Shown: positions 3,001 to 52,533 of the stretch, one piece after another | Layout of the letters: each line of letters opens with the position of its first letter | Position numbering within the stretch: position 1 is the first letter of the stretch | Assembly: GCA_964035545.1 (NCBI GenBank) | Contig: OZ037765.1 | Span: 13,960,698 to 14,024,697 of the forward strand | Direction: 5' to 3' | DNA from: Bugula neritina | Taxonomy: Eukaryota > Animalia > Bryozoa | DNA length: 64,000 bases | Notes under the pieces: generated by a model | Database searches by the model: none | Told to the model about the DNA's origin: nothing | The model's input: the letters and a program-made list of their open reading frames with translations, nothing else | Program-made: the position numbers and the translations under genes

Positions 3001-3440
3001 ATGAGCTCAGCATGTTAATCATATTTCTAATAGATGTGTAAAGGTTAACCTGGACAGGTTTAACATCAAAAAGTTCTTGGAGTCTTAATTACTGAATATC
3101 ATGTACAATTTATTAAAGTTTGTATTAAAATGGAAACTTAAGTTTCTATATGAATGTGATTTTTTATTATAACAATTTGGTAAAAAAGAAGCAATTGCTA
3201 TTAAATTAAACCTATGGGCAATAATATACAATAACTCATATTCAGTTTTACTGAAAAGTAATTACTGCACTGATAATTGCATATGAACTCTTAAGCAATT
3301 AATTATTTTAGTGTTTAGGTAGAAATTCACAACTTGCCTATAGCTATAATGTTCTTTTATGGAAACATAAGCTTCTAAGAAGCTGGTAAATATCATTATT
3401 AGCAAAGAATAAACTTTTTCAATTTGCTTTGTAGTAGGAT

Positions 3441-3463
3441 CACAGGATAGTTAAGGGCATCCT
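3441..3463 (+). repeat. Left terminal inverted repeat (23 bp)
   Basis: CACAGGATAGTTAAGGGCATCCT; inverted copy at 14445-14467. Confidence 0.9.
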
Positions 3464-4840
3464 CCACATAAATATGATGAATTTGTAGTCTCAGTTCTTA
3501 ATTATTATTTCTCTGTGGGTGGTGTGCGTGTTGCCTACTAATCATAATATAGCATGAGGTTTAGCCGTGACCAATAAACAGCCACATCTACTAGAGCTGC
3601 ACCTCTTCGAATTATTATTATTTGTGCAGTCAATGTTGAGTTTGCTCAGTGTCTGTGGTTAATTATCATCAATTTATCACAGGCTGCATGTATTACAACA
3701 TGGCATTCTCTTCTCATCAAGTTACAGCTCAATAATAAGCCTACTATTTGGTGATTGAAATTATATCAATTTAAATTATTATTTTTTACCCAGTTGGATT
3801 ACAGAAGCCCTCAATACTTTTTTAATCTCGTTACCTTTTGGGAAATTGTTTCAGAATGGCTATGTAACAAATAATCTAAATTGTACTCCCTTTTAAACTA
3901 AGGTTGAGATCATTGACTATTAGCTTTCTATCCATAGATGCCATTGGCATGACTGTAACACTTTCTGTGAGAGAAGGCAGTTCTAGTTCTACATCTTTTT
4001 AATCAAAGCAGCAAATAGTGATGATATGACTCATCAAACACAGTGGCCCTGCTTAGTAAGGTAGCATTGTGAAAAATACCAATATGAGAAATATAGTATG
4101 GTTATGAGTTTATGGCTAATTTCTATCCCAAACATACATATACAATGCATATTTTAGATTAACGTTTTATTTTGCTATCTATACTACAGATTTTTCAAAG
4201 CTGTTTAGTGTAAGGCAGTGTACTATATTATATTTTAAAGAACCTTTCTATTGAACGGGGATGCAAGGATGTTTTATGGCCTTGTGACTACATCACTTCA
4301 TAATCAATTATCTGTTTTAACATTTAACTAGTGTAGTGAAAATAATAAATAACATACTGGAGCCACTTGAACCTTGTAAGAAGCTCACTTCAGTGATGGT
4401 AGTTTACTTGTTAATTGGTAATTTAACTAGGTTGGTGCGTCTACGCACTATAATAGAGGGAATTTAGGAATTTAAGTCATGGGTGCTTAGGTTAAAATAT
4501 CAAAAATTTTAATTGATATAAAAATAAAAAATGCAAAACTTAAACTAATGCTAATCAACAATGCTTATATATAAACTTTCCATTATAAAACTTGTTGCCC
4601 AAATTTGGAATTAAACCACAGACATTTGGTTTTTAAGCTGATGAGCTATGACAGTCACATCAAAACTTCTAAATTCTGCCTTAACCCATTGTGGTCATAC
4701 AATTAGCTCGGGTGCTGTTTTCGATAGCTACAATTAATATTTGCTACAGCCAGACCCACACAACCTGTTGTTTTTGTGGTTGCATTACGTAGGAGCAGTT
4801 GCTGCTTGGAATTACTAAAATACAAAAATTGCGCCTTTTC

Positions 4841-4870
4841 TGACTCAGTGCAGGGTTATTCAGTTCAGTT
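4841..4870 (+). promoter_or_regulatory. Possible core promoter of the transposase (TGACTCA plus tandem TCAGTT initiator-like motifs)
   Basis: TGACTCA at 4841-4847 and TCAGTT at 4860-4865/4865-4870, just upstream of ATG 4886. These are short motifs and could be chance. Confidence 0.25.
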
Positions 4871-4885
4871 ACAAACAAGATAGCC

Positions 4886-7800
4886 ATGGGGAAAGATTAC
4901 AATGAGAATCAGTGTGGATTTTTAGCAACAATTTACTTTATACACCTTAAATCAGGTGCTGAAGTAGAGCATTTCAACAGAGAGTTTAAAGTCACAAAAG
5001 GATTAACTGCCAAGGATTATAGTAGAAAAAGAAAGCAAGCTAGTAGGCATTTCAATAACGCCCTATCCTACGTTAATAATAATAATGAGAAAGAAAAAGA
5101 TAATTTTGTTTCCTATTTCTCATTTCAAAACTTCAAGAAGCTGTCAGCAGCAAGTAAACTAAAGCACAACTACAATAATTGCCTAGAATGCGCTGAAAAC
5201 CATAGACCAATGTGGATAATGAAAAGAAGCAACAAATGCCATCTAGAGACTCCTGCTAAAACTGCTTTGAATTCTTTAAAAGCTGTATTGGACAAGACAC
5301 CGACTGAGATAACTGCTACTGTGGTGGATGATTTTGTTAGAAATGTAATAAAACCAGTCACAGAAAAATTAAAAGGAACACCCTTCTCAGCAAAGTTATC
5401 TATTGGCTCAAAGCGTAAAGCAGTGACAGTTGACGCAGTCCCTAAGAAGGTTCGCAGAGCCATCATCAAGTCTGCCAATGATGAAATGAATGATGAAACC
5501 ACTAATAAAGATTTCATATCGCTCTATGCATCTAAGCAATCACAATCAGAGTGGGATGTGCAAAGAAAACGATCATTTGGTGAAATGAGGCAAAACAGAA
5601 AGAAATCACACACCGGCAGACTAACTGATTATACATTCAATGAAATAGTTGTAAAATCAGCTTTAAAAGAAAATGAGGACATAAATTGGTCTGCTCTAAG
5701 CAAGTCAGCAAACTTGAAAAATGCCAACAATAAAGCTCCTAGAAACGCAGGCCAGGTAAGACTTAATCAAATTGTAACTACTGCTGCTAATTACTTTTTT
5801 GGCAGAGTTACCATTTTTTATTTTAAATATGTTATCTATGCAGAAAAAGTTTGACAAGATTATCACCATTACTTTATTTCATCTTTGATGGATCTTCCAA
5901 AAACATAAATTGCACACACACATAATATATACTGACATATATACACACACATAATATTTACTTACATATATACATACATACACACATAATATATATGTCA
6001 TAGAAGTTGAGCAAAAGTAATATTTGCAAATGTAGTACATCTATCATCTATGAAACAGGAGTGTATTGACTTGTTTACCAGGTTATGAAAGAAGTCGCAG
6101 AACATGTTTTGAAGCATCCTGTACAAAGAAAGCCAAAAACCCGAATATCATGGCTAAATTACAAAAATCTCAGTCTAAATATCAAACGAAAAGCTTCTGT
6201 AACTAGGCTAAAAATAAAGAAAAAGCGGATGATAGACAACGGAGAGATTGATGTTGGGAAAGCCATAGTACCAATAGAATACCAGACTGTACAAGTTCAA
6301 TCAAATGGCACATTGGTAGGTTGATTACTCCTAAAGTCAATAACTGAGCTTTTCAGCACACTTGTACTATGTTACAGTAAGTATAAAGGACTGATAATAT
6401 CATTTCTTACTTTATCTAGTTATTATTTAAAGTATTTGGTATATCATTCTTTAATTTTGCAGGTCAAATCTAAAAAAGAGGTATCTGGTAGAAAGTTCTC
6501 TCTTCTAAACATACGGAGAGATCATCTCGCCAGAATGGAAAAGCTGAAGATTTTAAGATCTGCAGCTGACATAGAAAAGATGTCTGTAGTAGATTCACTA
6601 GCTTTCCTGGAGAGAAATGGTAGGATTTGAATTAAGTATATCCAGAGGCTCATTTGTCTTTAAAACTTGTTCTACAAATAAATGATACTGATTTTCTTAA
6701 CATAATGAACAACATTCTATGACTTTTGAGATTTATGAGCTACATAAATCAAAACTAGCGCTGCAATAGCTATAGAAAACTTTATTTGAACAAAAAAAGA
6801 TATTTACAGCTAAAATGCTTGCAATGTGGAGCAAGGCTTATCTCAATATATCCATGCCTTGTGGAAATCAAAGAAGCCTCAAAATTTCTGTCATCTTTTT
6901 AGAGATAAGCTTTTTTAGACTAAGACCAAGTAAATATAGTCAATATTCCAAAGGCCCATTGCTCCGAAGGTGCATTATTCCGAAGGTGCATTAGTCTGAA
7001 AATTGGTAGATATAGTATTAAATCACTGAGAATATCATAAATTTTACTCACAATCTTGCTATATTATTGCTAGCTGTGGGTGGCGTGCGTGTGGCCTACA
7101 AGTTTGTAATTTTTTAGCCTGAAATTACGCTATGATGCTGCCTCAATTAAGGGCTCCATCATCTATCAACATTCCATTGTGGCTGCTCCATAAACTTAGT
7201 ACACAGCAAGCTATTCACTAGCCTGTCAGCTAGCAAGCCTGCAATTAGTAATCTATGCATTAGTTTCTCTTCATCTCCAAGTGTTCACTGAAGTATGAAG
7301 TGTTGTGCAAGGGTGATATAATAAGTATTTTTATTTCACAGTTCATGTAAAAATGACAGCTATAGGCAATGAACTCATAATATCCAGTTCAATGGCTATA
7401 GCGACTGCAATTCTATTCTAGCTACAGTCAGTCAGCTTATATAGGCCCTTCACACGTTGACTATTAACTGAAAAACTAAATTAAAAAATATTAAAGGAAG
7501 CAAACATTTTGGGTCTACTGTACTGCATTTATGATAAGCTTAGAAAAAGTTTACCTTGTATTTTATAAAAAATAGTTTGCATTTGAAGTTGGCGTCAAAA
7601 AATTATTGGTATTGAATGAAATAGTAAATTTCTGGCTTGGCAGTTAATTATTTAATATCACATATTTAATCTCTAAAATTATTTGTAAGCTGCTAAACTG
7701 CATTATTCTATGCTAGTATTCTTAATATCAGTAAATACGAGCATTGGGGACAAAAAATAATAAACATCTTACTCTGAAATTAAATAACCAAAGCTGCACA

Positions 7801-10800
7801 CCAAACCAAACAACCCCACAAGACATGTAGATGAGGGCAACATTATTAGTATATAAGAGTTCAGGCCCGCCAAATAAAACCTCACCTAACCTAAAATTTG
7901 AAAACCATGTTGCAGATCTTCCTGTTGCTCAGACTATGTTCAATAAATAATTTTAGTTCTAATAATAGTTCTACTAATTTTCGGACTAATGCACCTTCGG
8001 AATATTGCCCAGTCCCCCCTAAAACTACCATAAAAAATCAGTCTGGAATGCGCAATCACATTGAATGCAATTCTTTAAAATAATTACTATTCAATGTTTA
8101 GGGATAGTGGTTGGCAGTATGGACAGCCCCAAGGAACGCCTTAAAGAAGCCTCGCAAAGTAGACATATGGTTTTGTGGCATGACCATTCAGAAATTGCTG
8201 GTAAACATTTATTTATTCATGTATTTTTGTACAAAGAAATGTTAGTTACATAATCAAGCTGTTCACCAATATATCTTATATGTATTTTTTTCAGGTAAAA
8301 GCCACTACTTGTTCATGGTATGGTTTTTGTACGACCCATGTACATACTATACAGATGGAGAGTTTTCAAAGATGAACTGCAAAGTAAGCTGATAGAATTA
8401 TGCAATCTCAATATAGAACACATTTCAATTAGGGTCATCTTATTTGAATTAAAGTTGCTACAATAAGCCAAGCTCTCACTACAGTATTACAAGTGTCGTT
8501 TAGTCTTTGGTAACAGCAATTACTAATGACTAGGTGTTTTAAAGAACAAGTGTTGAAATACACCAAAATATTTTGAAACATAAATGTTTACTTTATGCTA
8601 ATTCAGGAAACACCAGTCAATGTACAATCAGTGGTGGAATCACCTTACATCTATCTACTTGCCCAATCGAACTCTTCCGTTAAGGATCAACTTCTTTATG
8701 TTCCTACTCGACTAGAAGACCTTAGAGAATTGGAGGAAAAAATTAGCTCAAAAGATGGACGAACATTTACTGACAAACTAAGATTTTTTTCTGGTGATAG
8801 TCCAGCAAGGCAACTAGAAGCTGGGCAGCAATGTGGAGGTAAGAGTGATAAACTATAAATTGTTTACACAGGATGAAATACAAGATAGCTTTTGCTACAA
8901 TAATAACAATACGTGTTTGACTTATTCCATGTATAAATTCCCCAAAAAGAATACATATTTACAAGAAACTATATTATTTATGATGAAACTTGATAAAAAC
9001 ATGCATATGTATGTTCAGGAATGTTCCCATGTATGTGTGGCACCCAAGACATTTACTTCAGTAACACTAGCAAATATAGCCAAGAAGGAGCTTTCTATAG
9101 TTCACAAGACCGCCTTCAGCTGCTCCATAAGACAAAAACATGGGAAGATGGTTTTACTAAAGGGAACCTAGCAGTCTTTCAGACAATGAAGGTATGAAAT
9201 TAAGCTGAGTTATAAATAAACACTGGTTGGGAGAAACAGGACTTCCATGTAATACATTTATATATGAGCAGCAATAATTACACTTTTTCAGACTGAAGGG
9301 CTCAGGAATGAATTGTTTCACAGAGGGGTTGCCTATTCAAGTGCAGAGAACATTTCAGGGCTAAGAAGAATTTTGAATGTTAGCCTAAAAGGTCAGAAAA
9401 TTTAGAATGATAAGTTTAAACTATATGTGGTTACAGCGTTGTCGGATGAGATACATAGAAAAAATATGGGCTGCATGAAGCCATAGTAACATAGAATAAA
9501 TCTTCATCCAATCTTAGTTTTGCATCTAGTGAAAGTAGCGATTCATTGTTATGTATAGACCCACACAAGCTACTGTGGGCGCACACATGTATATATAATC
9601 TTTATGAAAAACTTAGTTACGAATATAACTTAAGCCTCACATAAGTTTCTAAATACCTACTTTACAGGTGTGAAAAGGCCTCCTGCTCTTCTTTGTACTA
9701 AGCTGGAATCACAGATCGATATAGGCAGCTACGAAATTTCATCAATAGAACCATTACATGATCTAAAAAATGTTATCAACAAAATTTTAAAAGAACTACC
9801 TAAAGCTGCAAAGAATAAAGAACTCAAGGAAAAATTGACCAATCTTGTTTCAGACATTGAAGGTGAGTAGAGATTCTAACTTGCTAGTAGAAATTGCTAA
9901 CACACATTTTCAATATTGTCTATATCAAAATTAAATAGCCATTTCAAAAACAATTATAAACCTATACAAACATGAATTATAGCTCAAAATAGAGAAATGA
10001 AGGGAACAGAATGCCGGCTTAATTTGGTAAAAGTCACCATCATGCTACAAGATTTCCAGCACACTGAAGATGGGAGAGCCATGTACGTTATGCTAGCAGC
10101 ATTGACAGAGCTGCAAAGTTTGGCATACATGTGTGACACTAATAGATGTCCTAGAACAATCCTCAGGGCATATAATCAAAGTTTTCTTTTTGCCATTAAG
10201 TGCATGGAACTATTTGAAAACCCAGAAACTTGCACCAAGCGCGCTATGTTTGGGATGCCCTTCCATTGCCTTTCAGTGCACTTGCCTGAAACATTGAGAC
10301 TTGTTTCAGGCAGATCATTAGTAGCCGAACACGCTGAAAGGCACTTTTATAAACTAAGGTGCGTACTAAAAAATAATACTAGTACAACAGGAATTTATGC
10401 AAAGTTTGTCCACTCACTTGAAAATGAATGCAAATAGCTTACTATAGGGGTGCTGTAGAAAGAACTCAGATCTATTTAAATTCAGCCCTGATAATATTAC
10501 TGTGATATATGAAAACAGTATTGTTTTAGGGAACTAACGCTGAGGTGCTCCAATAGAAAATCGCAAAGTATTATAGCAAGTGCTATGTTTAGAATAGTGG
10601 TAGAAAGAAAGGCTGCTGATGATGCCATTACCAGCTACGGCAGACAGGAGCACACTATCTCCAATGCATGTAGTGGCCTTAGCCTAGGACATAACACCAT
10701 ATTCTCAAACAAGTAGGTCACTGTCTGATAAGTAAGAATAGTAGCTACTTTGTTGTGTATGATATTGCTACTAAACACAGGCAAATATGCTACTTAAAAG

Positions 10801-11438
10801 TCTATCACTATTTTTACACTAGTTTCCTCAAAGCTCATAGGACAGCAACACTTCACCATTTCCGACGAATTGCTGACTTTCTAGAAATTGGAGAAGGAGT
10901 TTGGTTCAAGGTACATGATGGGGGAGTAGAGTTCAAGGATGGAAAAAACTGCCCAGACAACTACAATTCAGGGCCAATATTAACTCATTTCAGGTAAATA
11001 TCTTAACTACCTATATACCACTATATATCATATATTGTATATATCATACAACAAAAGTAGACTGTTTCTTCCTAAAAATTAATCAAAGAAAATAAAATTA
11101 ATTAAAGAAAATAAGCTTCCACTTGAAGAAAATTAAATGGAAATTCTTTACAACTTGAATCTAAATTGCATGTCCTAGCTTGAAAAAAATTGCATACAAA
11201 ATTTGAACAGCTACTATCTAATTTTTATTAATTCTAAGCAGTTTGTTTTATTTAACATGTTTGGTAACCACCAGAAATTTTTTTGTTAGATCGAGAAACA
11301 TGAAAGACATTAACAACATGCTGAAGACAAGCTGGGAGTTTTGCATCAGAAATAAAAACTCATTAAAAATTCCACTTTTGTGTGACATGCTGACAGATAA
11401 GAAGACAGCTGATAAGCAAGGTAAAATATTCTTTTGAA

Positions 11439-11493
<55 letters not shown>

Positions 11494-12434
11494 GTTATTT
11501 ATATGTTAATTACAAGCAATTTGAAAAATGAGCAATAATTTTCTTCTGCCTAAAATGTCTATTGATAAAATTTTAACAGTGTCAAGAAAATATGAAGAAA
11601 TCAAGCCTGCTATAAGCAATGTGTTGAGTAGTTTGGCAAAGGACAAGCATAAAGAAGTAGAGAACTCTATTGCTGTTTCTGCATCCAATACCTTGAATGA
11701 AACAGATGAGAAGCTTGATGAATCTTCATATGTGTGTGCTGTACCATTGTTGACACAATGTAAGTAATTTTAGATGCTGCCTCCCAATTTTAAAATTACT
11801 TATCAATTTGAAATACATCAAATACACTAAGAAAAAATTATTTTAAATTGGCAGGCCAGACAGAGGTACCAAGCATTTTGCCTAAGAAACTTCAACAAAA
11901 GAACACAGTTACTGGTATGTTGCTTTAAGTATGGTTATCATACACATATAACATACTTATTTTCAGTAACATAAGTTATAGTCATTTAGATTTAGAAAAT
12001 AGAACCATGCAGCTACTATAATGACTTCAGGGCAGCCAATGCACTCACATGTAATCTGAAATAATTAGAATCACCCTGGTGTTTTACAGCATATATTTCT
12101 GCCCACCTTACTTGCAATCAGTTGCTTTTCAATTTTAGATGCTATGAGGAGTCTATGGCCTTACAGTAAAACGATTTTAGAAAGCTTTCTTTCAGCTAAA
12201 CACCGGTTCAAACAACATAACTCTTGCGTTAATAAATTAATGTTGAAATCTGCAAGCCATAAAGTAAAGCCATATTTCTTGAAATTTGTTAAAATATTAG
12301 AGGAAGAAGAAAAAGCAAAAACCATAAGCAAGTTCAGAGATAGAGGACTGATTTCTATGGAAAGTAACTCAGAAGACAATTGGAAGATTAAAATTATTAA
12401 TTATTGGTTGAATCAAATTAATGAGTTTCTATAA
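4886..12434 (+). CDS. 16-exon DDE transposase (~1181 aa), CMC/Transib/RAG1-like catalytic core
   Basis: Exons 4886-5755, 6082-6315, 6463-6619, 8102-8200, 8295-8383, 8607-8838, 9019-9191, 9292-9391, 9668-9862, 9983-10358, 10530-10712, 10823-10993, 11290-11420, 11580-11759, 11855-11914, 12139-12434. All introns are GT-AG and phase-compatible; the join is 3546 nt with no internal stop seen. Motifs: LWHDHS (D1), FFSGDSPAR (D2), GGMFPCMCG, IEPLHDLK, PFHCLSVHLP, AEHAERHF (E). Confidence 0.8.
6941..8018. mobile_element. Non-autonomous foldback/MITE-like element nested in transposase intron 3
   Basis: Left arm 6941-7010 is built of ~15-bp subrepeats (TCCGAAGGTGCATTA-like). Right arm 7970-8018 (TCTACTAATTTTCGGACTAATGCACCTTCGGAATATTG...) is its inverted counterpart. 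No coding capacity; the outermost left end looks eroded. Confidence 0.6.
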
Positions 12435-14198
12435 TAAAATTATTCGCATCCTTTTTTTCTATTTTTTTTCTAACTTTAAGAAAAATAAACCTAAATGTGA
12501 AACCAAATCAATATCAAAAGATGAAACTATTTTTTCTGAAGTGTAATTCAACATCACTAAACATGTTTGTTCTAGTTCAACATCATTATGATTAATATTA
12601 TGACATGAGTCTTACAGTTAGTGTTATTGATACTCATACTGATACTCAGTCTCATGTCGATACTCATAGCATTAGCTGATGACTTTTATTAGATACGTCA
12701 TTGCCAGTAACAAAATGAATACAAATATATAAAAAAATTAATGAATAATAATTATAATAATAATATACATTATATTAAATTAAAATAATACTAATAGTAT
12801 TAGTAATAGTAAATAATAAAAAATTATTATTAAAAATTACTAATAGTAATATATTACTATTAGTATTAGCCGTAATGCTAATACTAATAACTATAAGATC
12901 ATCACTATGAATATTATGTGAGTATTTGCTGAAAAATTTACTTACCCTGTCCCACAAAAAATACTTTCACTGTTGTATAATTCCAATCTCAGTTTGTCAC
13001 TTGGAGAGTGAGAATAATATAAACACGCAGACGGTACCCAGCTATCGCACTTTGTACACTGTATAGGTCGCGAATAATGAGCCAATGTAATGGATTCTCA
13101 TCCTCATTATTATAATTACTGTTGCGTATGTTTTGAATGCTGTAATTGTAGCTAAGTTGGGCTAGCTTTCTAATGCCTTATTATTGTGATTGTTGTTAAA
13201 GCTTTCAGTATAATGTAATTTTCATGAAATACGCATTCCAGAGTTATTTTCTCTTTCTGCTATTTTATCGTTTTGCATTAATACTGATACTGGAAATTTG
13301 TGTGGCTTTTATGAATACCTTCAATACATAGGTTGGCCTATTGAATTATTCGTTTTCCTTTGTCTACTTTTCTTTTGTTTCTGTCAAGCTTAACTTTCTT
13401 TTGTCTGTTGGAACATTCTAGATGTGAATTCTTGTGTATAAAAGCAGGCGAGTTTCCAGTATAGTTCAGACTACTACTGGAGCTCGCTGGTAGTTGGGCC
13501 CTAAGCTGTATCTGATACAATAAAGGTTATCCTTATTTGTACTCAAATACTTGGCTTATTCTCTCTAACACAAAGAGTATGTTCAGGCACTAGTTGCATT
13601 CATAACCCACAGTTTACTACACCATAAATACAGCAATTTGCTTGAAGTCTCAGTATGTTCAGGAGTGGATGTTTCATATTTTATAACCCCCCCCCCATTC
13701 AATATATAAACTCCCCATTCTAATTTTTTACTTTTGCGTTGTATTTACATGAATTATATTACGTTATTTAAATAATAATAGTTTAAGAATTATAAATATT
13801 CTGCAATTTTAGATAAAGTTACTTTTTCTAAATTAGGTTATTGTTTACTTCTCCCCCTAGCGTCACGACATCCTACGCGCTCTTTTGACATCAGTACAAT
13901 CACGCATTCAAAGCTTATCATAACATTGTCAACATTGCATTGCATAAGCAGAGAGCTAGTAGCTAGTAACTAGTAATAAGTGCGTTGGTGTCTTCTCACC
14001 TCTACGTGTTCAACGAAGCGCGAAGTGATGCGCACTGCTAATTCCTCAGGGGAAAATATAGCATTTTCAGTGTATAAATCACTAATTTATGAGAAATCTA
14101 GTAAGGTTATTGAAAAAATAAAAAAACTTACACTGGAGAAATATCTCAGGATTCCAACCGTGCAATTTTTATTCAGATACCATGTTTTACTGCTGAGA

Positions 14199-14397
14199 TA
14201 TTTTACTGGTACTGAAAAGTCAGCTTTTCAGCCAAAATTGGCCAAAATTGGGCAGTTTTTTGTCTATAACTTTGCAAAAAAAGTGAAAATTGAAAATTCC
14301 AAAAAAGTTGCACTGAAGAAAAAGAAGATCTACAACATAGTTTTTAAATTTTGGCTCTAGCACAATTAGGGGAGATTTTATTTTACTGGTACTGAAA
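14199..14397 (+). repeat. Subterminal 19-bp direct repeat pair TATTTTACTGGTACTGAAA
   Basis: Exact copies at 14199-14217 and 14379-14397, 180 bp apart, near the right TIR. Confidence 0.7.
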
Positions 14398-14444
14398 TCT
14401 TATATGATTACAATGCAAACCTCAGTGAGGCAGTTGCAGCTAAA

Positions 14445-14467
14445 AGGTTGCCCTTAACTATCCTGTG
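14445..14467 (-). repeat. Right terminal inverted repeat (23 bp)
   Basis: AGGTTGCCCTTAACTATCCTGTG, the reverse complement of the left TIR with one mismatch. Confidence 0.9.
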
Positions 14468-17400
14468 ATGGCCTCTTATAACTGTTTGGACATAATGTGT
14501 AATTTGTTACCCAATACTTGAAAACTTTCAAGTGACTTACATAAATTGAATTACCATAGTCACTATACCCTGATTTTAGACACTTAACAATTCAATTATT
14601 GCTGACTGTTATTTAATAAACTCCAAAACACTGTTGCATGTATTTAAAGTTCAACCAATTTTCATCAACTGATGACTATACATGGACACTGAAATGGGAT
14701 TATGATGGTTAGTAGAAGTAATTGTAGAGCTGTTGATAGTCAATTGAATATAGTCATTATGTGCTGCAATGAAATGACATGTCATAAGCTCGATTTTATG
14801 TAATTAACTTATAGAAGCGCTGCTCTTGGGACTCACTAAAAGGCAAACACCGGTAATATCTAGAAATGAGATAAAGATTCTTCTAAGTAGCCAGTGCAAC
14901 TCGGAGTTCATGCTATACAACCTATAAACTACTTCCATTGATTTGATATCAATTGCTAAAACAGTCAGCTTTCCTGCTCACTTCATTTTCATTGCATATT
15001 TGATCAGTGTTGCGTTGATACAGACTAGCTCACCATTAAAATGTTCTACCTGGAGACAATTCATATGTTTAGGTAAGTTATGAAGATCTTGTTATTTCTG
15101 GAGGTGACAATAATGTCACTAACAAGTACTGCTTCTGCTGTGAGTGTTTTTACAACAGTGTTTCAAGGCTTACTAAATTAGTAAAAATATTTTTGTCCAA
15201 TATTTGACTTAATTTTTTGAAATTGGCCTCTCACCTGGGACCAGCCCTTGTCTGATGCAGCACCAGATAGTGTGTCAATTTAGAATAGCATAAAAAGGAT
15301 TTCCACAACTCGTGTTCGGCTGCTATAGCTGGCATACACAATGATTGTAATAGCTAATGCATATGATATTAGGACACTGTTATAGGTAAAGTAAAGCTTT
15401 TCGGAAGCCCGATACATAAAGTCTATTTTCTGGAGCTATCATCAGTGAGGTTTAAGAATTTTTGCTGGCAATAAATAAAAGAGTTGACAAGATTTAGCAA
15501 ATTTAAGTTTAAAAAATCTATTCAGGGAATTCTTAGATAGCGTCTTGCATAGTTGGCTGCAAGTAAAAACGGCTACGATGTTGGGAGGTAGTCACTGAAT
15601 GATTCAAAAAATGAAAATAGCCTGTGCTTATAGGCATGTGCAGGCATGTAGGTGTTTTAATTATAAACTAACCTGATGGTTGTTCCTTAAATTAAAACGA
15701 TCCACAATGATAAAAGATGTTTTAGCTGAGCTAGGATTCTTTTGAGGACTATCAAAGCAGCACAGGGGCAACTTTAACTAGACGGCCTTCTAAACATCAA
15801 CATTAACACTGCTGAGATTGAACTCTAGTCACTCCAGAGTGATATCCAACATTATACACACAAGATGTTGTAGTTACATTTATGTTTATATTCTAAACTT
15901 GTTTGTCCAAGCAAATTTATATTCATATTATTATTATAGAGGCCTATTGATGCACAAAACGCTAAGCCCTTGATTTGAGTAATTTTTTTAATTATTTTCA
16001 TTTTCAACTAGGTTATACTAATCATATGGAGATGAGAGTTTTGGGTTTTATAAATATTTACCAACCACAATTATTAGGCATGAAATCTCCCATTACCCAA
16101 TAAACTTAAAACATTATGTAGGTGGTTGAATGAGGCACTATAGATCAAATGAGCTTTTCAGAAATTAGTTGATAATACTGATGGCAATTAAAACATGTTG
16201 GTATCTTGAACCATAAGGACTGCTATACACACGCGCATATATTCGCACATTAATTCTACTCCAATTACTGCTTCACCTTTTAAAAATTAGGAGATCAATG
16301 AACTAGTGACTGAAACATTTTAACAGTTTTAAAATTATTATTACTGGGAGTTTAAATTTTGTGAGCTGTGATTAATTTTCAAGCATGTTTGTTTACCATG
16401 TATTAATCAATTTTGAGAAATAAATTAATTAAATTAGTTTTAGCTCCTGAGAGATATGTTAGCATGATGTAGCTTTAAAGTGTGACTCTTCTATCTTACT
16501 TTGTAGACAGTAATCTACAAAACTATAGACATAGCAAACAATAAATTGGATAGTTAAGATTAAGCAAGCTGCAGGCTAAAAATAACTGTAGAAGCATTTT
16601 AGGCTATTGCTTTAATTACTATTATCAATTTTACTATTGCACATTTCAACACAGTTTTATACATCGAACACAAGTTTTTACTGGTGCCATTCTCTAAATA
16701 TTTTACAAGCAGTACCCATTAAAATTTATATCTTGAGGTATTTATGAAATTAACAGTAACTTGAAAAAGGTTCAGTAGTTTAATGTAGAGTATGTGAGTC
16801 ACTGTTAATACAAATCGTATATGAAATTGATTATTTTATAAGTAACATGTAGCTGTCATTTGTTTGAATAATTCGGGCTAGATTATTTTATATTGCTGCC
16901 TATGCAAATATAAATTTATTCATTGGATTTCCTCTTATTGTCAACACCATTCTATACCAGAAAACCAAATATTATGCTTCACTAAGCAAAACAGATGAAT
17001 GCGAAATAACTTAAGTAGCTTAAAGTTTTATATTTCATTATAAATCAATGCATAACTGTTACACAATGGTTTTTGCTAGATTGGGTAAATGCACTGTTGT
17101 TAAAAGCTTACATACAAAGACACCTAGTCAGGGTCCCTTAACAGTCACACCTTGGGCCCTAAAATTAAACTGACAATTATATTTTGAATAGCTACTATTT
17201 GAGCAAATACTGTCAGATCTTCTCTGTTTCTTTGCACTGTATGACAATTATTTTTCTAATGTCACTGACATCCATGATAGGCTGCAGGTGTATTAGCAGA
17301 TGTCTCTGTCTATCATAATCACAATACTAATAATCGTTGCATGTGAAAGAGGTTTTGTTACTACTGCCTTATTTAGAAATTCCTAAATATTTCAACCAGA

Positions 17401-18661: not shown

Positions 18662-20260
18662 ATGATGGACTGCAATACAACAGTCTGGAGTGGCAACAGC
18701 ATAGCATGGAGTTCATGTGATAACATTTCTGAAGAATTATCCTCAGGGATTATTAGCAACATATCCTGTCTGTCTGCTGACTATGTTTACCCTAATCACC
18801 CTTACCCTCCCTGGGGCATTGCTCTTCTTGGTCTTATGGCTGGCATCACCAGTCTCATCACAACTGGAGGAAATATATTAGTAGTTTTAGCTTTCATACT
18901 AGAGAGGTCTTTGAGGCAGCCATCTAACTATCTTATTGCAAGTCTTGCAGTAACCGACATATTAATTGGTGTTTTTTCTATGCCGGGTTATTCTTTATAT
19001 TTGCTTAAAAAGTATTGGCCACTGGGACAAATCTTGTGTGATTTGTGGCTGTCGCTTGATTACACAGTGTGCTTGGTCTCCCAATACACTGTTTTTCTAA
19101 TAACTTTAGACAGGTTTTTTTCTGTAAAGGCACCAGCCAAATATCGAAACTGGAGATCTACAAAAAAAGTTAAAGTTTTCATAAGTGTAACATGGATGGT
19201 TCCAGCCTTTGTATTCTTTGTAACGATATTAGGTTGGAGAAAATTTACCGGTTCATTGCCACCTAGTGACTGTACTTGTGCAGCAGAATTTCAAACCAAT
19301 TCTCTCTTTACAGTTATACTAGTTATCTCATACTATTGGGTGACCCTAGTTATCATGATAGGGCTATATATTGGAATATATCGAGTTGCTTTACAGTTAC
19401 ATAATAGGTCCCAACAAAGTGAGAATCGATTTAGGAAAATGGAGCAAATGACCACCAACCACTGCCAGGGTATCGAGATGGCTCAATTTGTAGATGATGA
19501 TATGGATCCTATGCCTAATAACCTCGATGGTGGTTTGTCACACAAACACTTAGCAAAGGCTACTCCAAAGAGCCCTGATGAAGGTAGTGACTTTAGCATT
19601 GAGCCTTCGACATCAAGCGATAGCGGCTACAGTAAGAAGTGCCCTCAGCATGACACTCGCATTGGAACCCATCAAATAGTAAAAACTGCGAAATCGAGAA
19701 CTCACACGGACTCGCCCTTGTGGAAACCTCGAAATTCTCTTACAAGTGACACAATTGATTGGGATGCGTTTGAGAATGAAAATGACGACAGTTTTGACAC
19801 TCAAACAAACAGGGTTCCATCAACCCGAATATTAGAACCAGATGAACCAGTCGACGAAGAAATGCAGAGTGACTACACCTGCCAAAGAATTTTAAACAGA
19901 ATATCCAAGACATTGACTCGGCTTGGCAAACCCACATGGTGTTTAACTAACTGCACATCATTTAAAACAAATAGTTCTAAAACTAAATCTAAATTTGCAA
20001 ATAGAGCTCGAAAAGCTTTTAGAACCATTACTTTGATTTTAGGAGCATTTGTGATATGCTGGACTCCATATCATGTTGTAGTGATAGTTCATTCATTTTG
20101 CAGTTCATGTGTTAATTTGACATTCTACGAATTTACATATTGGCTTTGTTATATGAACTCTCCTCTCAATCCTTTTTGTTATGCTTTGGCTAATCAACAA
20201 TTTAAAGAAGCCTTTATAAAAATTATAAAAGGCAAGCATTTTAGAAGAAGAGCTCATTGA
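18662..20260 (+). CDS. mAChR-B: Muscarinic acetylcholine receptor, B-type (GAR-1/GAR-2-like), intronless class A GPCR, 532 aa
   Basis: 7 TM segments; WPLG..LCDLWLSLDYTVCLVSQYTVFLITLDRF (TM3 Asp, DRF); long third intracellular loop; CWTPYH in TM6; YWLCYMNSPLNPFCY in TM7. A tttgtag acceptor just before the ATG suggests a 5'UTR intron. Confidence 0.88.
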   Translation: MMDCNTTVWSGNSIAWSSCDNISEELSSGIISNISCLSADYVYPNHPYPPWGIALLGLMAGITSLITTGGNILVVLAFILERSLRQPSNYLIASLAVTDILIGVFSMPGYSLYLLKKYWPLGQILCDLWLSLDYTVCLVSQYTVFLITLDRFFSVKAPAKYRNWRSTKKVKVFISVTWMVPAFVFFVTILGWRKFTGSLPPSDCTCAAEFQTNSLFTVILVISYYWVTLVIMIGLYIGIYRVALQLHNRSQQSENRFRKMEQMTTNHCQGIEMAQFVDDDMDPMPNNLDGGLSHKHLAKATPKSPDEGSDFSIEPSTSSDSGYSKKCPQHDTRIGTHQIVKTAKSRTHTDSPLWKPRNSLTSDTIDWDAFENENDDSFDTQTNRVPSTRILEPDEPVDEEMQSDYTCQRILNRISKTLTRLGKPTWCLTNCTSFKTNSSKTKSKFANRARKAFRTITLILGAFVICWTPYHVVVIVHSFCSSCVNLTFYEFTYWLCYMNSPLNPFCYALANQQFKEAFIKIIKGKHFRRRAH

Positions 20261-22130: not shown

Positions 22131-23413
22131 GATGAAAGAGAAATAATTATACATGCCAAAAATTCACTACTCTTCAACTCTGGAAATAAGGCATGGGGAA
22201 AACATAACCACAACCTCTTCGATGTTACAATGGGAGGATACGACGGCGCAGAAACATGCGAACTAGTTGGGGCGTACATTTTAAACTCAATAACACTAAA
22301 ACATGGCAAAAACTTCGGCCTGTACAGAGATGACGGCTTAGGAGTATCTGACAAAACACCCAGAGAAATAGAGAACATAAAAAAGGACATCTGCAAAATA
22401 TTTTCTGAAAATGGATAAAAATAACAATCGAAGCAAATAAAAAAATTATTAACTTCTTAGACACCACACTCAACCTAAACAATAAAACCTACACACCATA
22501 CGCTAAGCCAAACAGTTCTACTAAATATATTCATAACAAATCCAACCACCCAGCAAGCATAATCTCCAACCTACCTTCGTCCGTTAATAAACGACTGTCG
22601 TCAATATCATCTAACGAGAAAATTTTCACACAATCCACCTACAACCACCAAAGCCTCCTAAACCAAAGTGGCTACAAACACCAACTACAATTCCTACCAA
22701 GAACCCAAACAAACAACACACAACAGAAATCTCGAAACCGAAAAAGAAAAGTTGTTTGGTACAATCCACCATACAGCCAACATGTAACCACAAGAATTGC
22801 AAAAATCTTCTTTAAAATCATGAATGAGGAATTTCCAAAACAACACCCACTCTATAAAATAATCAACAAAAACACTATAAAGGTTAGCTACAGCTGCATG
22901 CCAAACATAAAACAGACCATAAATGCCCACAATAACAGACTATTAGAGAAACAGAAGCAACAAAACAAAACCCCCAGAAAAAACTGCAACTGTAGAGAAA
23001 AAGAAAGTTGTCCACTGAAAGGAAACTGTCAGGAGAGCAGAGTTATATACCAAGCAACTGTGGAAACTACCGAAAACGAGCCTGCAACATACATTGGCCT
23101 AAGTGAAGGACCGTTCAAACTAAGATACGCAAACCACAGATCATCATTTAAAAACAAGGAGAAAGCAAATCAAAGAGAACTTAGCAAACACATTTGGCAA
23201 CTAACTAACAAAAACATTAAGCACAACATAAGCTGGAAAATATTAAGAAAAGCGAAACCATACAACACAACTACCAAAAGGTGTAATTTATGCCTATGGG
23301 AATGTTTCTTTATTTTATACAAACCTAACATGTGTACTTTAAACAAGCGAAATGAACTCTTATCAACCTGCCGACACTCAAAAAAATTCTTACTGTGCAA
23401 CCACAAAACCTAG
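22131..23413 (+). pseudogene. Penelope RT + GIY-YIG ORF, 5'-truncated, one frameshift near 22415
   Basis: [15 protein letters not shown]...KIFSENG continues in another frame as KITIEANKKIINFLDTTLNL...VWYNPPYS...MNEEFPKQHPL...KFLLCNHKT*. Confidence 0.85.
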
Positions 23414-25570: not shown

Positions 25571-27239
25571 ATATATGATATAGATTAAATAATAAATTGA
25601 AATATTCATATTAGTGTTAATGTAATTCAAATTGTTTGTTCAACTTTGAGTTATACTTCAACTTAGCCTCATAAATATTAATTAATAATTTATAGTTATG
25701 AAATTAACTTCAAATGAGTATTGTAACTTGATAATTTTATTATTATTATAAATTATATTTATGCTAAGCCTAATAGCAATACTAATACTAATAGTGATAC
25801 TAATGCTAATACTAATAGTAATAATAATCTATAATTATATGATATTATTAATAATATTATTATCAATAATTACAACAATGGTAATAATACCTATGGCTAT
25901 ATTATTATTTGTAATATATTTGTAATATTCTAAAATAAAATAACTGGAAATCAAAACACTTTTCAACTATCACTATGATGTCGAACTATACCTAAGTATA
26001 TTAATATTATCATATTTCTAATATACTTATATTTAGAGTTTATAGTAGTAATAGTTGAAAATAAAAACTGTTTTGATTTTCATTTTTATTTTTAGTAAAC
26101 CATACAGTTTATACTATAACTTATAGTAATAGCTAATGGTATACTTATACTAATAGTAATCATATACTTATAGTGTTGCTTTTACTTTTAGTTTTACACT
26201 TGAACTTTCCTTCTAGCGTTAATTTCAACAGTAGGTAATTGTCATTGTAACAATTCTTAATCATTGATGCTGATAATGATTGCCGCAATGGTAATCACCA
26301 TATGAATGCAAATGATGATTACAATCACAATGTAAACATCAACATGACTCACTATGACTCACTGTTCATTCTAAGTAGTAGTAGCATCAGCAGCAGTAGT
26401 AGTAGTACACGTAGTACTGCTTAGTATAAGTTCTATTATTGTAATATCTAACTGTATGTAATAGTTTCATAGTTACTGATAGTGGTGGTGTTACAGTTAC
26501 ACTAAAATAAAAGTAAGCAATTGCAAAACATCAAATTTAAAGATAAAAGTGATCGACAATGCCTATAGTTATTGACGTGGTAGTTGAAAATGTTTAATAT
26601 CAATTTCAATGTGAATTTTCCATCAATACTAATATTTATGTTAACAATTTCGTTGCTATTATAGTAAAAATGTTATAATTATTGCTGCTGTTGCTGCTAC
26701 TACCACCACAACCACCACCATTATAGTTATAGTCAATGTTATATAATAAGACACCCATAGTTCATATGCCTAAAGCATAGAATTAGAAACAGCTTCATTT
26801 CAAGTTATGTTTAGTTAGTTCTCTTAAGTTTTGTAAAGCTGATGTCATCCACAGAAGCACAAACTATGCTATTTTATGTTTAAAATAATGTCTAAGTTTG
26901 CTAGTTTGGTTTTGGCTAATAAATCAAAAAATTTAGCTTGTTTCAGTTACAGAATTTTAAAATGAAACAGGCAATGTTAACTTATGTATTAATTGTTATA
27001 AGAACTGATTGTGATGTAACTCGTCAGCTCAAATTTACTTAGCAGCTCGATGGAACAGATTTTTCTTTGCTTGGCAATTGTGTATCACAAACGTTATTAA
27101 AGAATAATTTATATTTGTTATAATTTTTGGAAACTAATTTTATTGTGTTGCTGCTTTTAGCTTTCAAAAGTTTGGAAAATGTAGTTTGACTTATATAGTT
27201 GTTTACATTTTTTTAGGTTTTAGCCTTTCAGCTTCAAAG

Positions 27240-30200
27240 ATGAATAGGTTTATACTGTACTTCTGGTACTTGGTGCTCATGTGGAACAGTTGTGCTGTAT
27301 TTTCTTCAGCACTCTCCATTGTCTCTAGCGAGGATTTCGACAAACCAATACAAACTTTATTATTAAGAGGGGACACACTATTTGTTGGTGGAACTGATAC
27401 CCTGTATAATGTGAATGCTAACACATTGTTGCTAAACACAAGTTATATATTATTTAACTATGCAATAGCTGCAAATACTCCTTTGCCAACCATTCTCTAC
27501 TTAGGAGAGGGAATGGACAACCGTATTATATTTTGCAGTGAATACAATGGCCAATGTCGGATAATCACAACTGATGCTCAGGATCGTATAGTCTCAGTGT
27601 ACAATTCATCCAACAATATAGTCGCAAATAAACGAAACAGCTCAGTTTTATTTGTCAACACAAAGTATGACAACATTGATGATGCTATTTGGGTAATAAG
27701 TTCTTTTGGTACAGAAATTTCCAAGGTTCCAGCTTTAGCTGTACGACTTCCTGCTACCTTGAAGTACTACAGAGACTCTGATTTTGCTTTATCTGGCACT
27801 GAAATACTTGGCAGTTTTCTCAAGTACACACAGGGTGCTTCATCAAGTTTTGTCTATGGCTTTGCATCCTCAGGATTTGTTTTTTATGTGAAAAATAAAG
27901 GTGGTAAAGCTTATATCGGAGCAACATGTGACAATGATGATAAGTTCTCTTCATTAGTTGAGTTTCGCTTGGTATGTAACAGTGATGGTGGTGAGCTTCG
28001 GGAATACATACAAGCTGCTACTCTGGCGAAGGCTGGAAATCTGCTATATTACTTTTTAAATCAACAGTCACAGTCATCACTAAAGCCAGATGACGATTTC
28101 CTCTATGCTGTGTTTGGAGCAGATAGCATAACTTCTTCTACATCTATATGCATATTTAGTGTTGAGGTTCTTGCAAATTTGGCTAACACTATTTATACTA
28201 AATGTCATGTGGAAGGAGATAAGCACAATGTTGTAGTTGGCCCTTCGGAGCTGACGACGGCATATCCAGATTGCGCTGTCTACAAGGTGTGTTTTGGGTT
28301 TTTACTCTTCAAATTTTGATTGACAGCTGTAGGTTTTGTTATGTAAGCAGTCTGGTGTACCATAAAAAGTCTGTGGAGACTGTAAATTTTCACTTTTTTG
28401 CTGAATGATATCATTCTAAATTTGTAAATACTTTCAAATGTATTCTGTAGGGTTTTAACAACACACCTGCGCTTACTTCGTGTCAAATCATCAAGTATCC
28501 TGGGTATGGACGTTTGTATGGCAACAGTCCTCTCCAATACTTAGTTCCCACGATACAGCACAGTATATTCGATCTCACATTTTCAGTTAATGCTATTACT
28601 GTATCTATCGTTCAGCCCTACACTGTTGTGTTCACTACTTCACCCAATGGGTTTATACGCAAGGTAAGACTAATTCATTTTAAAAGCGGTACTAAATGTA
28701 TGATCTCTAACTTTTTCAAAATAGAAATATATGATATTAAACTACATTAGTTTGTGTGTTTTGTTTGCTTTAGATTGTGATTACTGAGCGTTCTTTAAAC
28801 AAAGTCTACAACACTGTCGATTTGAATCCACATATGAGGAATCCAGCTTCTTTACTAACAGATATTGCTGTTAACAACAACTTTATATATGCATTAACAA
28901 GCAAGCAAGTGTTTGGTGTACCCATCCATCATTGCGATGTGCCTACTAGCTGCCAAGCGTGTAGTGAACTTGGGGACCCTCACTGTGGCTGGTGTGTTCT
29001 CAGCAACAAGTAAGTGCAAGCTGCAGACTGTCTCTTCTTTCTCAGTTTAGTCCACTCAGGTTTGGGCCAAGCCTTGGTTTATCATGTGTACATTATTTAG
29101 ATGTTCTGCCCGGAACGAGTGTGAGAAGTCTGGTGTCACAGGGCACTGGCTACAGGAGTCATATGGTAGTCTTGGCTCAGGCTGCGTCCTTCCAACTATG
29201 GAAGAAACAATGATTTCTCTCCAGAAGCATGCTGATGACACTGCATTTCAGGTAATACTTCCTGATTACAAGAATGATCCATACCTTTCATTATTGATTT
29301 AGTATTGTCCCATGATTGTTCAATGGCTTTTGTGTAACTGAAAGGAATTTTTTTTCAAAATACTAAAGCTACTTAGTTCTACTAAAAGCATTATGACATC
29401 ACTTTTTATGTTGTGATATACATCTGTGTCTGCACCTTGCTGGTGAACATTAAGCAAATACTTTGGAGTACAATAATGTGTCCGTAGTATAACGGAAATA
29501 CTGTGATGATGTTGCTAATGTAAAACCATGAAGCTTTCTCTGATTATGCTCAAGTAAATTCATAATTATTTTTGTTAAATTCGTTGCTAATTTGTAGGCT
29601 GTCTACATTGTGGTGTTTCCATGAAACATTTATCTGTTTCTTGTCAACCCCATTTTTATGAAACTGATGTCGTTGTGAAAACAGTACATTTTGCATATTC
29701 AAAAAAAATTAGGTAACTGATTTTTTTTAAAAGAAGTTTAAATATGTTATGTTTATATAAGCTATAAAGCATCAATAATTCGTTGCAAGATTTATTCTAA
29801 ACAGCTCAATAAGAACAGCATGAAAGTTTCTGCTCACAGTTCTGTTTTTGTGATGACCAGTTTCTAAAGCAGCCATTTTTACGGGAACATCAGTGTGGGC
29901 AGGCTTTTATATGACGTAATATAATATAAACCGTTTCCCCCTCTTTTGATTAGCTTAAGGTAAATCTCAACCAAGTGCCAGAGCTAGAAGGGAACGAAAC
30001 CTATCGTTGTTGCTATCTTAGTGGTGCATCAGAGCTGTGTACTGATGCAGAAAAGTTGGTATCTGTACTCTTCTCCGACTCAACACCTTTTATAGCATGC
30101 GTGAATGTTGATCTGCAGCATATTTCACAGAGCATACCCAGTGGAGAAGGTAACAAGTATAGGATTTTATGTATGTTTAGCATTTTTTTTGCTCTTAATA

Positions 30201-47076: not shown

Positions 47077-47943
47077 ATGGAGACTGAAAATGCTAGAATG
47101 CAACCACCCCCAGTAGAAGGTGAGCGTAGAAATGCTGTTAATCCTGTGAATCGTGAAGGAGAAGAAGCTTATAGACATTGCTTGAAAGCTCCCACCTTTA
47201 CTGGGTCGGAAGATGTCGAACAATTTATACAAGAATTTAGAGAGGTAATGGAAGTTGCTCAATGACCGCATAGAGTGGCCCTTATTCAATTGCGGAGAGC
47301 GGTGACGGAGCAAGCCAAGCCGTACGGAGTGGGAACGGACGTAGACGGCATACTGGCTGCGCTGCGGGCCCGTTTTGGCACCTCCGTCATAGACGCTAGG
47401 ACCAAGCTGGAGAGATTGTGCCGCACCCCGCGGACCTCGCTGCAAGAGCATGCCGCGACGGTGAAGAAGCTGGCGCAGATTGCATATAGCGATCTGCCAG
47501 CACAACACCAAGAGCGTTACACCTATGACGCCTTTGTCCAGTCCCTAAACGACCTGGACCTAGACCATCACCTACGAGCTAAAGGGATAACCAGAATAGA
47601 GGATGCCCTGAAGGCTGGAGAAGCTTACCTGTTGGCTACCCAAATGCATCGAGCACAAAGGAACCCACCAGTAGTTGGAGTCAGCGCTGCCAGGGCTACG
47701 ACAGGCTCCGAAGCCCTCCCGCTGGAAGCCGAAGTGGACCGTATGGTAGAGATGCTGGGACAATTGGTAACCATTCTGGCCGGTGCTGGCCCCGGTCAGG
47801 CCTTGCGGATGCCCCCAACACCTGTGGGGCAGGGCTGGAGTAGCGCTGATCAGGACCAGGGACAGAAAGGACGACCCCAATACCAGGGGGCGTTAAACTG
47901 TCACGGCCCGCGGACACACTCCCTCCCCGCGGGCCGCAACTAA
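47077..47943 (+). CDS. gag: Gag, interrupted by an in-frame TGA at 47263-47265
   Basis: ORFs 47077-47265 and 47275-47943 are in the same frame: KAPTFTGSEDVEQFIQEF...EVAQ*PHRVALIQL...ALRARFG. Confidence 0.85.
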
Positions 47944-47949
47944 AGGAGT
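47892..47949 (+). promoter_or_regulatory. Predicted -1 programmed ribosomal frameshift signal (G_TTA_AAC + H-type pseudoknot)
   Basis: Slippery heptamer 47892-47898 in the gag frame; 5-nt spacer; stem 47904-47913/47927-47936; loop ACTCC (47918-47922) complementary to GGAGT (47945-47949). Confidence 0.7.
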
Positions 47950-48241
47950 ATGGTGGAACGCGCCGTCGTCTGTCCGTACGGACGCGGCGGAACATTCCAC
48001 CCGAGTGGCAGGTACCACGCAGGACTAGTAGGCCCGCACAACGGCCCAGTACCTTCTCTCTGCCACTCGCTAACCGGTTTCACCGGTTACCTCGGGAGGA
48101 GGAGCCCGCCACTGAAATGGAGCCAGAAGGCCCAGTGGAGAGGCCCAAACCCCGCCGGCACCAACCTCGCCGCCGGAAGCCCCGTAAACCACGGGTGAAA
48201 CCCCCGCCGTCCTGTCAAACCAGGACAACACATGCGGGGGG

Positions 48242-52516: not shown

Positions 52517-52533
52517 GTCTTGTATTCCTATTC

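Follow-up and report, generated by a model that had tools for sequence, protein, structure and literature searches.

A 64,000-nucleotide stretch of the genome of the bryozoan Bugula neritina (assembly GCA_964035545.1, contig OZ037765.1, positions 13,960,698 to 14,024,697 of the forward strand; hereafter the window, to whose positions all coordinates refer) was found to carry, at 3441-14467, an 11,027-bp element which is very probably a full-length, apparently autonomous and recently active cut-and-paste transposon of the CACTA/Mirage/Chapaev (CMC) clade, or CMCT clade when Transib is named with it. The clade reportedly comprises EnSpm-CACTA, Mirage, Chapaev, Transib and RAG1 (Yuan & Wessler 2011, Kojima 2025). 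That the element is a genuine, apparently autonomous and recently mobile DNA transposon is supported because copies bounded by the same terminal inverted repeats (TIRs) have their own target-site duplications (TSDs), paralogous empty sites exist, there is a large progeny of miniature inverted-repeat transposable elements (MITEs), and the exons of the predicted transposase gene are constrained. An initial annotation of the window, made from the letters alone, had suggested a potentially autonomous element, and these four lines of evidence bear it out.

Termini, copies and target-site duplication

The TIR arms proposed in the initial annotation were recovered at 3441-3463 (forward strand) and 14445-14467 (reverse strand), inverted relative to each other, identical at 22 of 23 positions and beginning CACAGGATAG, with the CACAGGA start that had been described. 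The dinucleotide AT was present on each side, at 3439-3440 and 14468-14469, and with these flanks counted in, inverted-repeat detection returned 25 nt at 96% identity. When the 216-Mb assembly of the same host was searched with a 19-nt terminal word (up to 2 mismatches), 400 forward and 386 reverse matches were obtained, compared to 1 and 0 for the reversed word as control, so the TIR pair is not a product of chance. All copies ended in CACAGG...CCTGTG, which is the 5'-CA(C)...(G)TG-3' form of the CMCT clade.

This search with the TIRs, together with a tabulation of flanks, had been recommended in the initial annotation, which would have counted a lack of other TIR-bounded copies and of any empty site against a transposon; five more full-length copies were found, six in total with the one in the window, and paralogous empty sites as well. 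One copy, on contig 4, was 100% identical across the 11,027 bp at another site with other flanks, and these differing flanks argue against an assembly duplication. The contig 2 copy and the first of two contig 6 copies were 98.7% identical to the window element, the contig 3 copy was 98.6% identical and carried a 1.8-kb insertion, and the second contig 6 copy was approximately 94% identical. All six stopped precisely at the TIRs, with unrelated flanks, and the dinucleotides duplicated at their ends were AT, AA, TA, TA, TA and AG.

Most of the matches to the terminal word paired at a distance of about 756 bp and so represent short derivatives, with approximately 390 such MITE pairs in the genome. 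The MITEs resemble the element over its last 477 bp (13991-14467, forward strand, 3' subterminal) at about 90% and over its first 170 bp at about 70%, and their mean pairwise identity is 94%. In 30 sampled 756-bp MITEs the two flanks agreed at 2 bp in 29 cases, at 3 bp in 3, at 4 bp in 1 and at 5 bp in none (dinucleotides TA x9, AA x5, AC x4, TT x3 and others), so that a variable 2-bp TSD was seen in 35 of the 36 insertions examined, full-length copies included. The annotation had cautioned that the palindromic AT might be part of the TIR; since the dinucleotide varies between copies and is duplicated in 29/30 MITEs, the AT on either side of the element is to be counted as a 2-bp TSD and not as TIR sequence. 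Five MITEs lying in satellite arrays with a unit of approximately 20 bp also provided paralogous empty sites, in that the left flank joined to the right flank minus one dinucleotide gave a 28-nt string with an exact match elsewhere in the arrays. Such arrays (unit near ACTGAAATACACTGCAACAT) host many MITE insertions on contig 1 at 14.9-15.6 Mb and on contig 2 at 18.2-18.9 Mb, and the window lies about 1 Mb away from the contig 1 array.

The predicted transposase gene

Between 4886 and 12434 on the forward strand, a gene of 15 exons and 14 GT-AG introns was predicted, with 3,486 nt and 1,161 codons and one terminal stop. The spliced, stop-free frame of the initial annotation thus stood in substance, while its 16 exons, 15 introns and approximately 1181 aa were revised to 15, 14 and 1161 aa. 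A tblastx comparison with diverged paralogues within the genome (48-83% identical in exon 10) revealed 15 conserved coding blocks with unconserved DNA between them, and between every two adjacent blocks a GT-AG intron of compatible phase could be placed without a stop arising in the split codon. By these blocks, a single conserved gene was detected in the element.

Exon 1 (4886-5755) encodes a 290-aa N-terminal region, probably DNA-binding, with an invariant H-x4-C-x2-C-x3-H motif at 5165-5203. Exons 2 (6082-6315) and 3 (6463-6619) have support from paralogues as well as from profiles of relatives. Exon 4 (8102-8200) holds the putative first catalytic Asp within WHDHS (8176-8190) and, after exon 5 (8295-8383), exon 6 (8607-8838) holds the putative second within GDSPA (8793-8807). 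In exon 7 (9019-9191) a Cys pair of the form C-x-C (C-M-C, 9030-9038) corresponds to the C(2)C zinc motif; exon 8 (9292-9391) carries a SAP-like insert (9301-9375), and exon 9 (9668-9862) the LH motif within EPLH (9748-9759). Exon 10 (9983-10358) contains both H(4)H (H-CLSV-H, 10264-10281) and the putative catalytic Glu within E-x-x-E-R-x-F (EHAERHF, 10327-10347). Exons 11 (10530-10712), 12 (10823-10993) and 13 (11290-11420) also map onto the profiles of relatives, while exon 14 (11580-11759), whose boundaries are provisional, is conserved only with a sister family in the same genome, and exon 15 (12139-12434, stop codon at 12432-12434) has a provisional acceptor.

Exons were scored singly against profiles of relatives whose coding length almost fills their contigs and which are thus apparently intron-poor. 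Exons 3 to 13 fell on the relative profile at 6-42, 48-74, 77-102, 104-178, 181-234, 237-267, 270-332, 340-458, 461-517, 520-575 and 577-606, collinear and nearly gapless, as did exons 1 to 3 on the four longest relatives. A missing sixteenth exon within exons 1-13 was ruled out, as consecutive exons leave no gap on the profile there; the difference of about 20 residues from the earlier length, if real, must therefore fall in the poorly conserved C-terminal exons 13-15.

The sister family (family B) was seen at two places, contig 6 near 7.085 Mb and contig 4 near 15.503 Mb, with approximately 50-70% protein identity, exons laid out in the same way and exon 1 intact. Its left end (CACAGCATAGTTAAGGTCA, CACAGCATAGTTAAGGTCATCC) is homologous to that of the element, whereas on the right the likeness between its two copies breaks off at one shared point that has no TIR.

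Among the near-identical copies, exons had diverged by 0.14-0.40% compared to 0.7-1.0% for introns (Fisher p 2e-5 to 2e-3), that is, 2-6 times more slowly, with the contig 2 copy differing at 5/3486 exon sites against 33/4063 intron sites (Fisher p 2e-5) and the 94% copy showing the same direction. Such constraint would be expected where only those lineages persist whose transposase still works.

An element which looks intact and yet is immobile, either as the relic of an ended burst or through a defect hidden by the gene model (an incorrect C-terminal exon or silencing of the promoter, for example), is unlikely on these data. The mean identity of the MITE copies, at just 94%, would suit such a relic, and the boundaries of exons 14 and 15 have their support only inside this genome. 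Set against this are the purifying constraint on exons, the contig 4 copy that is identical at 11,027/11,027 positions at a different site, and three more copies at approximately 98.6-98.7% identity with stop-free exons. The exons of the contig 2 and contig 4 copies were complete as well as stop-free, while exon 1 of the first contig 6 copy carried an insertion of 6 nt that keeps the frame, and the exon 6 alignment of the contig 3 copy ended two bases short of the acceptor.

Relatives and predicted fold of the transposase

All sequence searches were carried out exon by exon, and structure was predicted for a natural relative, P0093. With exon 10 as a phmmer query against 1.84 billion representatives, 420 relatives were obtained at E <= 1e-3. 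The longer of these, along with the matches from a profile search, were "uncharacterized" or "hypothetical" proteins of Argopecten, Mytilus, Ptychodera, Branchiostoma, Exaiptasia and Actinostola, and thus of Cnidaria, Mollusca, Hemichordata and Cephalochordata; the expectation that routine annotation would call such a gene an uncharacterised host gene agrees with these labels. Neither Transposase_21 (PF02992) nor DUF4218 (PF13960) of Pfam matched the exons or 56 relatives, DUF1258 did not match the family by HMMER, the family profile gave no RAG1 or Transib chain in the PDB at E <= 10, and exon 8 of the window alone had no Pfam match.

Motifs occur across the family in the order W-H-D-H/N-S, G-D-x-P-A, Cys pair, SAP-like insert, E-P-L-H, H-x4-H and E-x-x-E-R-x-F. 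The D of WHDHS, the D of GD.PA and the E of E..ER.F are kept throughout the aligned relatives that span these positions, LH and H(4)H are likewise invariant in the alignment, and the window exons carry D, D, C-x-C, LH, H(4)H and E.

An AlphaFold2 model of P0093 (742 aa, 56-row alignment) reached a pLDDT of 90 and a pTM of 0.89, and its best match among solved structures was the RAG1 core (Foldseek E 7.6e-10). By VIA, RAG1 was aligned with Z 17.3 over 428 residues (root-mean-square deviation 4.3 Å, RAG1 residues ~480-1004), followed by the amphioxus RAG1-like protein BbRAGL (Z 14.4) and HzTransib (14.1), with lower scores for the P element transposase (10.5) and retroviral integrases (~7.7). 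In the ESM Atlas, the nearest named neighbours by shape were predicted structures, namely plant Transposase_21 with DUF4218 proteins of CACTA elements (TM 0.54 by query, 484 residues aligned), arthropod Transposase_21/DUF1258 proteins (TM 0.52) and Plavaka (TM 0.41). The fold of exon 1, predicted from a 7-row alignment, had a pLDDT of 48 and was unusable.

Within the P0093 model, D157 lies in beta-1 of the RNase H-like sheet, D256 directly follows beta-4, and a helix starts at E535/E538. When transferred by the offset of the aligned ranges (model residue 30 to RAG1 483), the spacing D256-x17-C274-x2-C277 falls on RAG1 709, 727 and 730, and parallels the RAG1 residues D708, C727 and C730. Similarly, H514/H519 and E538 of P0093 parallel H937/H942 and E962 of RAG1. 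From the motifs and the modelled fold of the relative, we infer that the window protein acts as a DDE transposase.

Classification and alternative explanations

The EnSpm-Mirage-Chapaev-Transib-RAG1 clade is marked by C(2)C, LH and H(4)H motifs, CA..TG termini and TSDs of 2-5 bp (PMC12730594, PMC4079192), and the literature gives TSDs of 2-4 bp for CMC elements compared to a canonical 5 bp for Transib. The 2-bp TSD of the element falls inside both the CMC (2-4 bp) and the CMCT (2-5 bp) range, and its exons contain LH and H(4)H, with a Cys pair of the C-x-C form. CMC and the Transib/RAG-like superfamilies, both named as candidates in the initial annotation, were each right at the level of the clade, with a RAG1-core fold and a CACTA-like shape in the relative. 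It does not represent a novel type of mobile element.

The element is assigned with high confidence to the CMC/CMCT clade, within which its TSD makes it Mirage-like. Mirage is the 2-bp-TSD branch of the CMC superfamily and was first described in Caenorhabditis. CAC...GTG termini, a 2-bp TSD and a DDE transposase with the Cys/His motifs of the clade are common to both, and the nematode DUF1258 cluster, DUF1258 presumably being a mark of Mirage-type proteins, was among the nearest named neighbours by sequence features (0.85, to be read as a lead only). The family of the element differs from Mirage in a SAP-like module between the Cys pair and LH, a long N-terminal region with the H-C-C-H motif, 14 introns, and the lack of DUF1258 similarity at HMMER level.

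With CACTA/EnSpm elements of the TnpD type, the likeness lies in predicted fold (TM 0.54 plant, 0.52 arthropod), CAC termini, subterminal repeats and a large multi-exon gene, whereas the TSD is 2 bp instead of the usual 3 bp, Transposase_21/DUF4218 matches are lacking, and the one conserved gene detected is without a second, TnpA-like gene. Chapaev and Chapaev3 are also found in animals and have CAC/GTG termini together with C(2)C, LH and H(4)H, which are cited as diagnostic motifs (PMC4079192), but their TSD is 3-4 bp (TWA in Chapaev3) where that of the element is a variable 2 bp, and the Chapaev3 transposase has about 550 aa compared to about 1160 aa here, in a subgroup with C-x-C. Transib, RAG1 and ProtoRAG appear, from the P0093 model, to have the whole core fold in common with the family, from the pre-RNase H region through to the C-terminal domain, and D, D, C..C, H(4)H and E follow in the same order at almost the same distances; they differ in a 5-bp TSD against 2 bp, in the absence of a RAG1 sequence match and in the SAP-like insert of the family, and no RAG2-like partner gene was seen in the element.

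Several results weigh against assignment as a transposon of this clade with a functional, spliced gene. Pfam searches with raw open reading frames (ORFs) and with exact exon translations gave nothing above noise, and SAP, which is no transposase model, was the only Pfam family among relatives (13/56 at up to E 1, best 2.5e-7); searches of PDB sequences with exon 10 and with the family profile likewise returned SAP domains only. The Pfam families taken as proxies for EnSpm, Mirage and RAG1 (PF02992, PF06869 and PF12940) had no match in this genome, a result of little weight as control genomes had none either. The fold evidence comes from P0093, which is approximately 30-40% identical to the window protein, and not from the window protein itself. 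Most relatives have C(2)C, while the window protein and its closest subgroup have C-x-C. In Logan contigs, searched for splicing, those with a 97% copy of exon 1 were unspliced genomic DNA, collinear through intron 1.

As to rank within the clade, the family could be an already catalogued animal EnSpm/Chapaev/Mirage group or an undescribed branch. We regard as a tentative proposal, with the odds leaning against it, that it forms a distinct, undescribed CMCT branch, SAP-bearing and RAG1-shaped, which is present in cnidarians, lophotrochozoans, hemichordates and amphioxus and stands between the classical CMC families and Transib/RAG1, with the element as its active type member. Among the papers listed by one full-text search on SAP domains in connection with transposase, CMC and RAG1, none used the phrase "SAP domain", which is weak evidence.

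It is rather improbable that the element belongs to the Transib/RAG1-like lineage proper and merely has a non-canonical 2-bp TSD. RAG1, BbRAGL and HzTransib are indeed the top solved structures, and the TIR start CACAGGA agrees with 5 of the 7 positions of the recombination signal sequence heptamer CACAGTG; a 2026 preprint also describes elements of the Transib lineage with 3-bp and TA TSDs. However, the PDB holds no CMC transposase structure, so whichever member of CMCT were compared, RAG1 and Transib would rank first, and the named neighbours by shape in the ESM Atlas, which are Transposase_21/DUF4218 and Plavaka, point away from this lineage. ESM sequence features similarly placed DUF1258, Transposase_21 and Plavaka (0.85-0.84) above RAG1 (0.82), all of them below the 0.9 level and so leads only, and CMC elements typically have a 2-bp TSD, subterminal repeats and a large gene of many exons.

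A domesticated or ordinary host gene lying between chance inverted repeats, with segmental duplications as its copies, was rejected on copy structure and retains a negligible probability, for although relatives are annotated as uncharacterised host proteins and no convincing TIR pair was found near those of Argopecten and Exaiptasia, the six copies end exactly at the TIRs, each between flanks unrelated to those of the others and with a 2-bp duplication of its own, and the approximately 390 MITE pairs have the same ends, with paralogous empty sites.

Proposed mechanism

For a cut-and-paste transposon of the CMC/CMCT clade, the triad would be formed by the Asp of WHDHS (exon 4), the Asp of GDSPA (exon 6) and the Glu of E-x-x-E-R-x-F (exon 10), which may carry out two-metal DDE catalysis at the CAC ends, with a zinc site of RAG1 type built from the Cys pair, LH and H(4)H. 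TIR or subterminal DNA may be bound by the N-terminal ~420 aa, including the H-C-C-H motif, and perhaps also by the SAP-like module. Excision would take place at the CAC ends, integration would proceed via strand transfers staggered by 2 bp on the target, and the same enzyme could mobilise the 756-bp MITEs in trans.

Repeats within the element

Intron 3 contains a nested, MITE-like repeat of approximately 1.07 kb (6937-8019) with a 49-nt inverted repeat at 6972-7020 and 7960-8008. It was found in every full-length copy, so its insertion predates the spread of the family. Elsewhere in the genome the repeat stands alone in at least 25 copies at 80-91% identity, and a part of it (7023-7308) shows approximately 72% similarity to the 756-bp MITE in the 5' part of the latter. 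A direct duplication of about 180 bp lies in the 3' subterminal region of the element at 14109-14400 (for example, 14199-14217 equals 14379-14397), which is overlain by a probably spurious 126-aa ORF at 13980-14360.

Neighbouring features of the window

A single-exon host gene for a muscarinic-type G-protein-coupled receptor lies at 18662-20260, with the transposon approximately 4.2 kb upstream; among its named relatives, that of the bryozoan Watersipora subatra comes closest (52%). A 197-aa ORF at 22820-23413 shows a GIY-YIG-like pattern (..VIYQATV.., ..TYIGLSEG..), lies in a stretch of strong strand skew (GC skew -0.24, AT skew +0.21), and is possibly part of another mobile element. At 27186-28319 there is a host ORF resembling the start of a Sema-domain protein. 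The region 47200-53600 holds a Ty3/gypsy-type long terminal repeat retroelement with a GC content of 50-58%, compared to 30-35% around it, and an open pol frame of 1424 aa at 48242-52516. At least 104 genomic copies, among 1858 first-look candidates, were 99-100% identical in protein over a 400-aa stretch, which points to a very recent and large burst of a compositionally foreign-looking element.

Significance

A gene that is labelled "uncharacterised protein" in many marine invertebrates is, on this analysis, a transposase. The termini, the TSD, a predicted gene model and a set of copies are now defined for the element, so that a group with few known active animal members gains one that is autonomous, clearly delimited and apparently live, along with its MITE partner. 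The modelled structure of the relative ties a family invisible to Pfam to the RAG1/Transib-type catalytic core, a link useful for the annotation of invertebrate genomes and for studies of the evolution of the RAG1 core, and possibly for a new transposon tool. If the family truly were a distinct branch, one invisible to Pfam and to routine annotation, the element, as a naturally occurring and apparently live representative, would offer an experimental handle on a RAG1-type core as it was before Transib and RAG.

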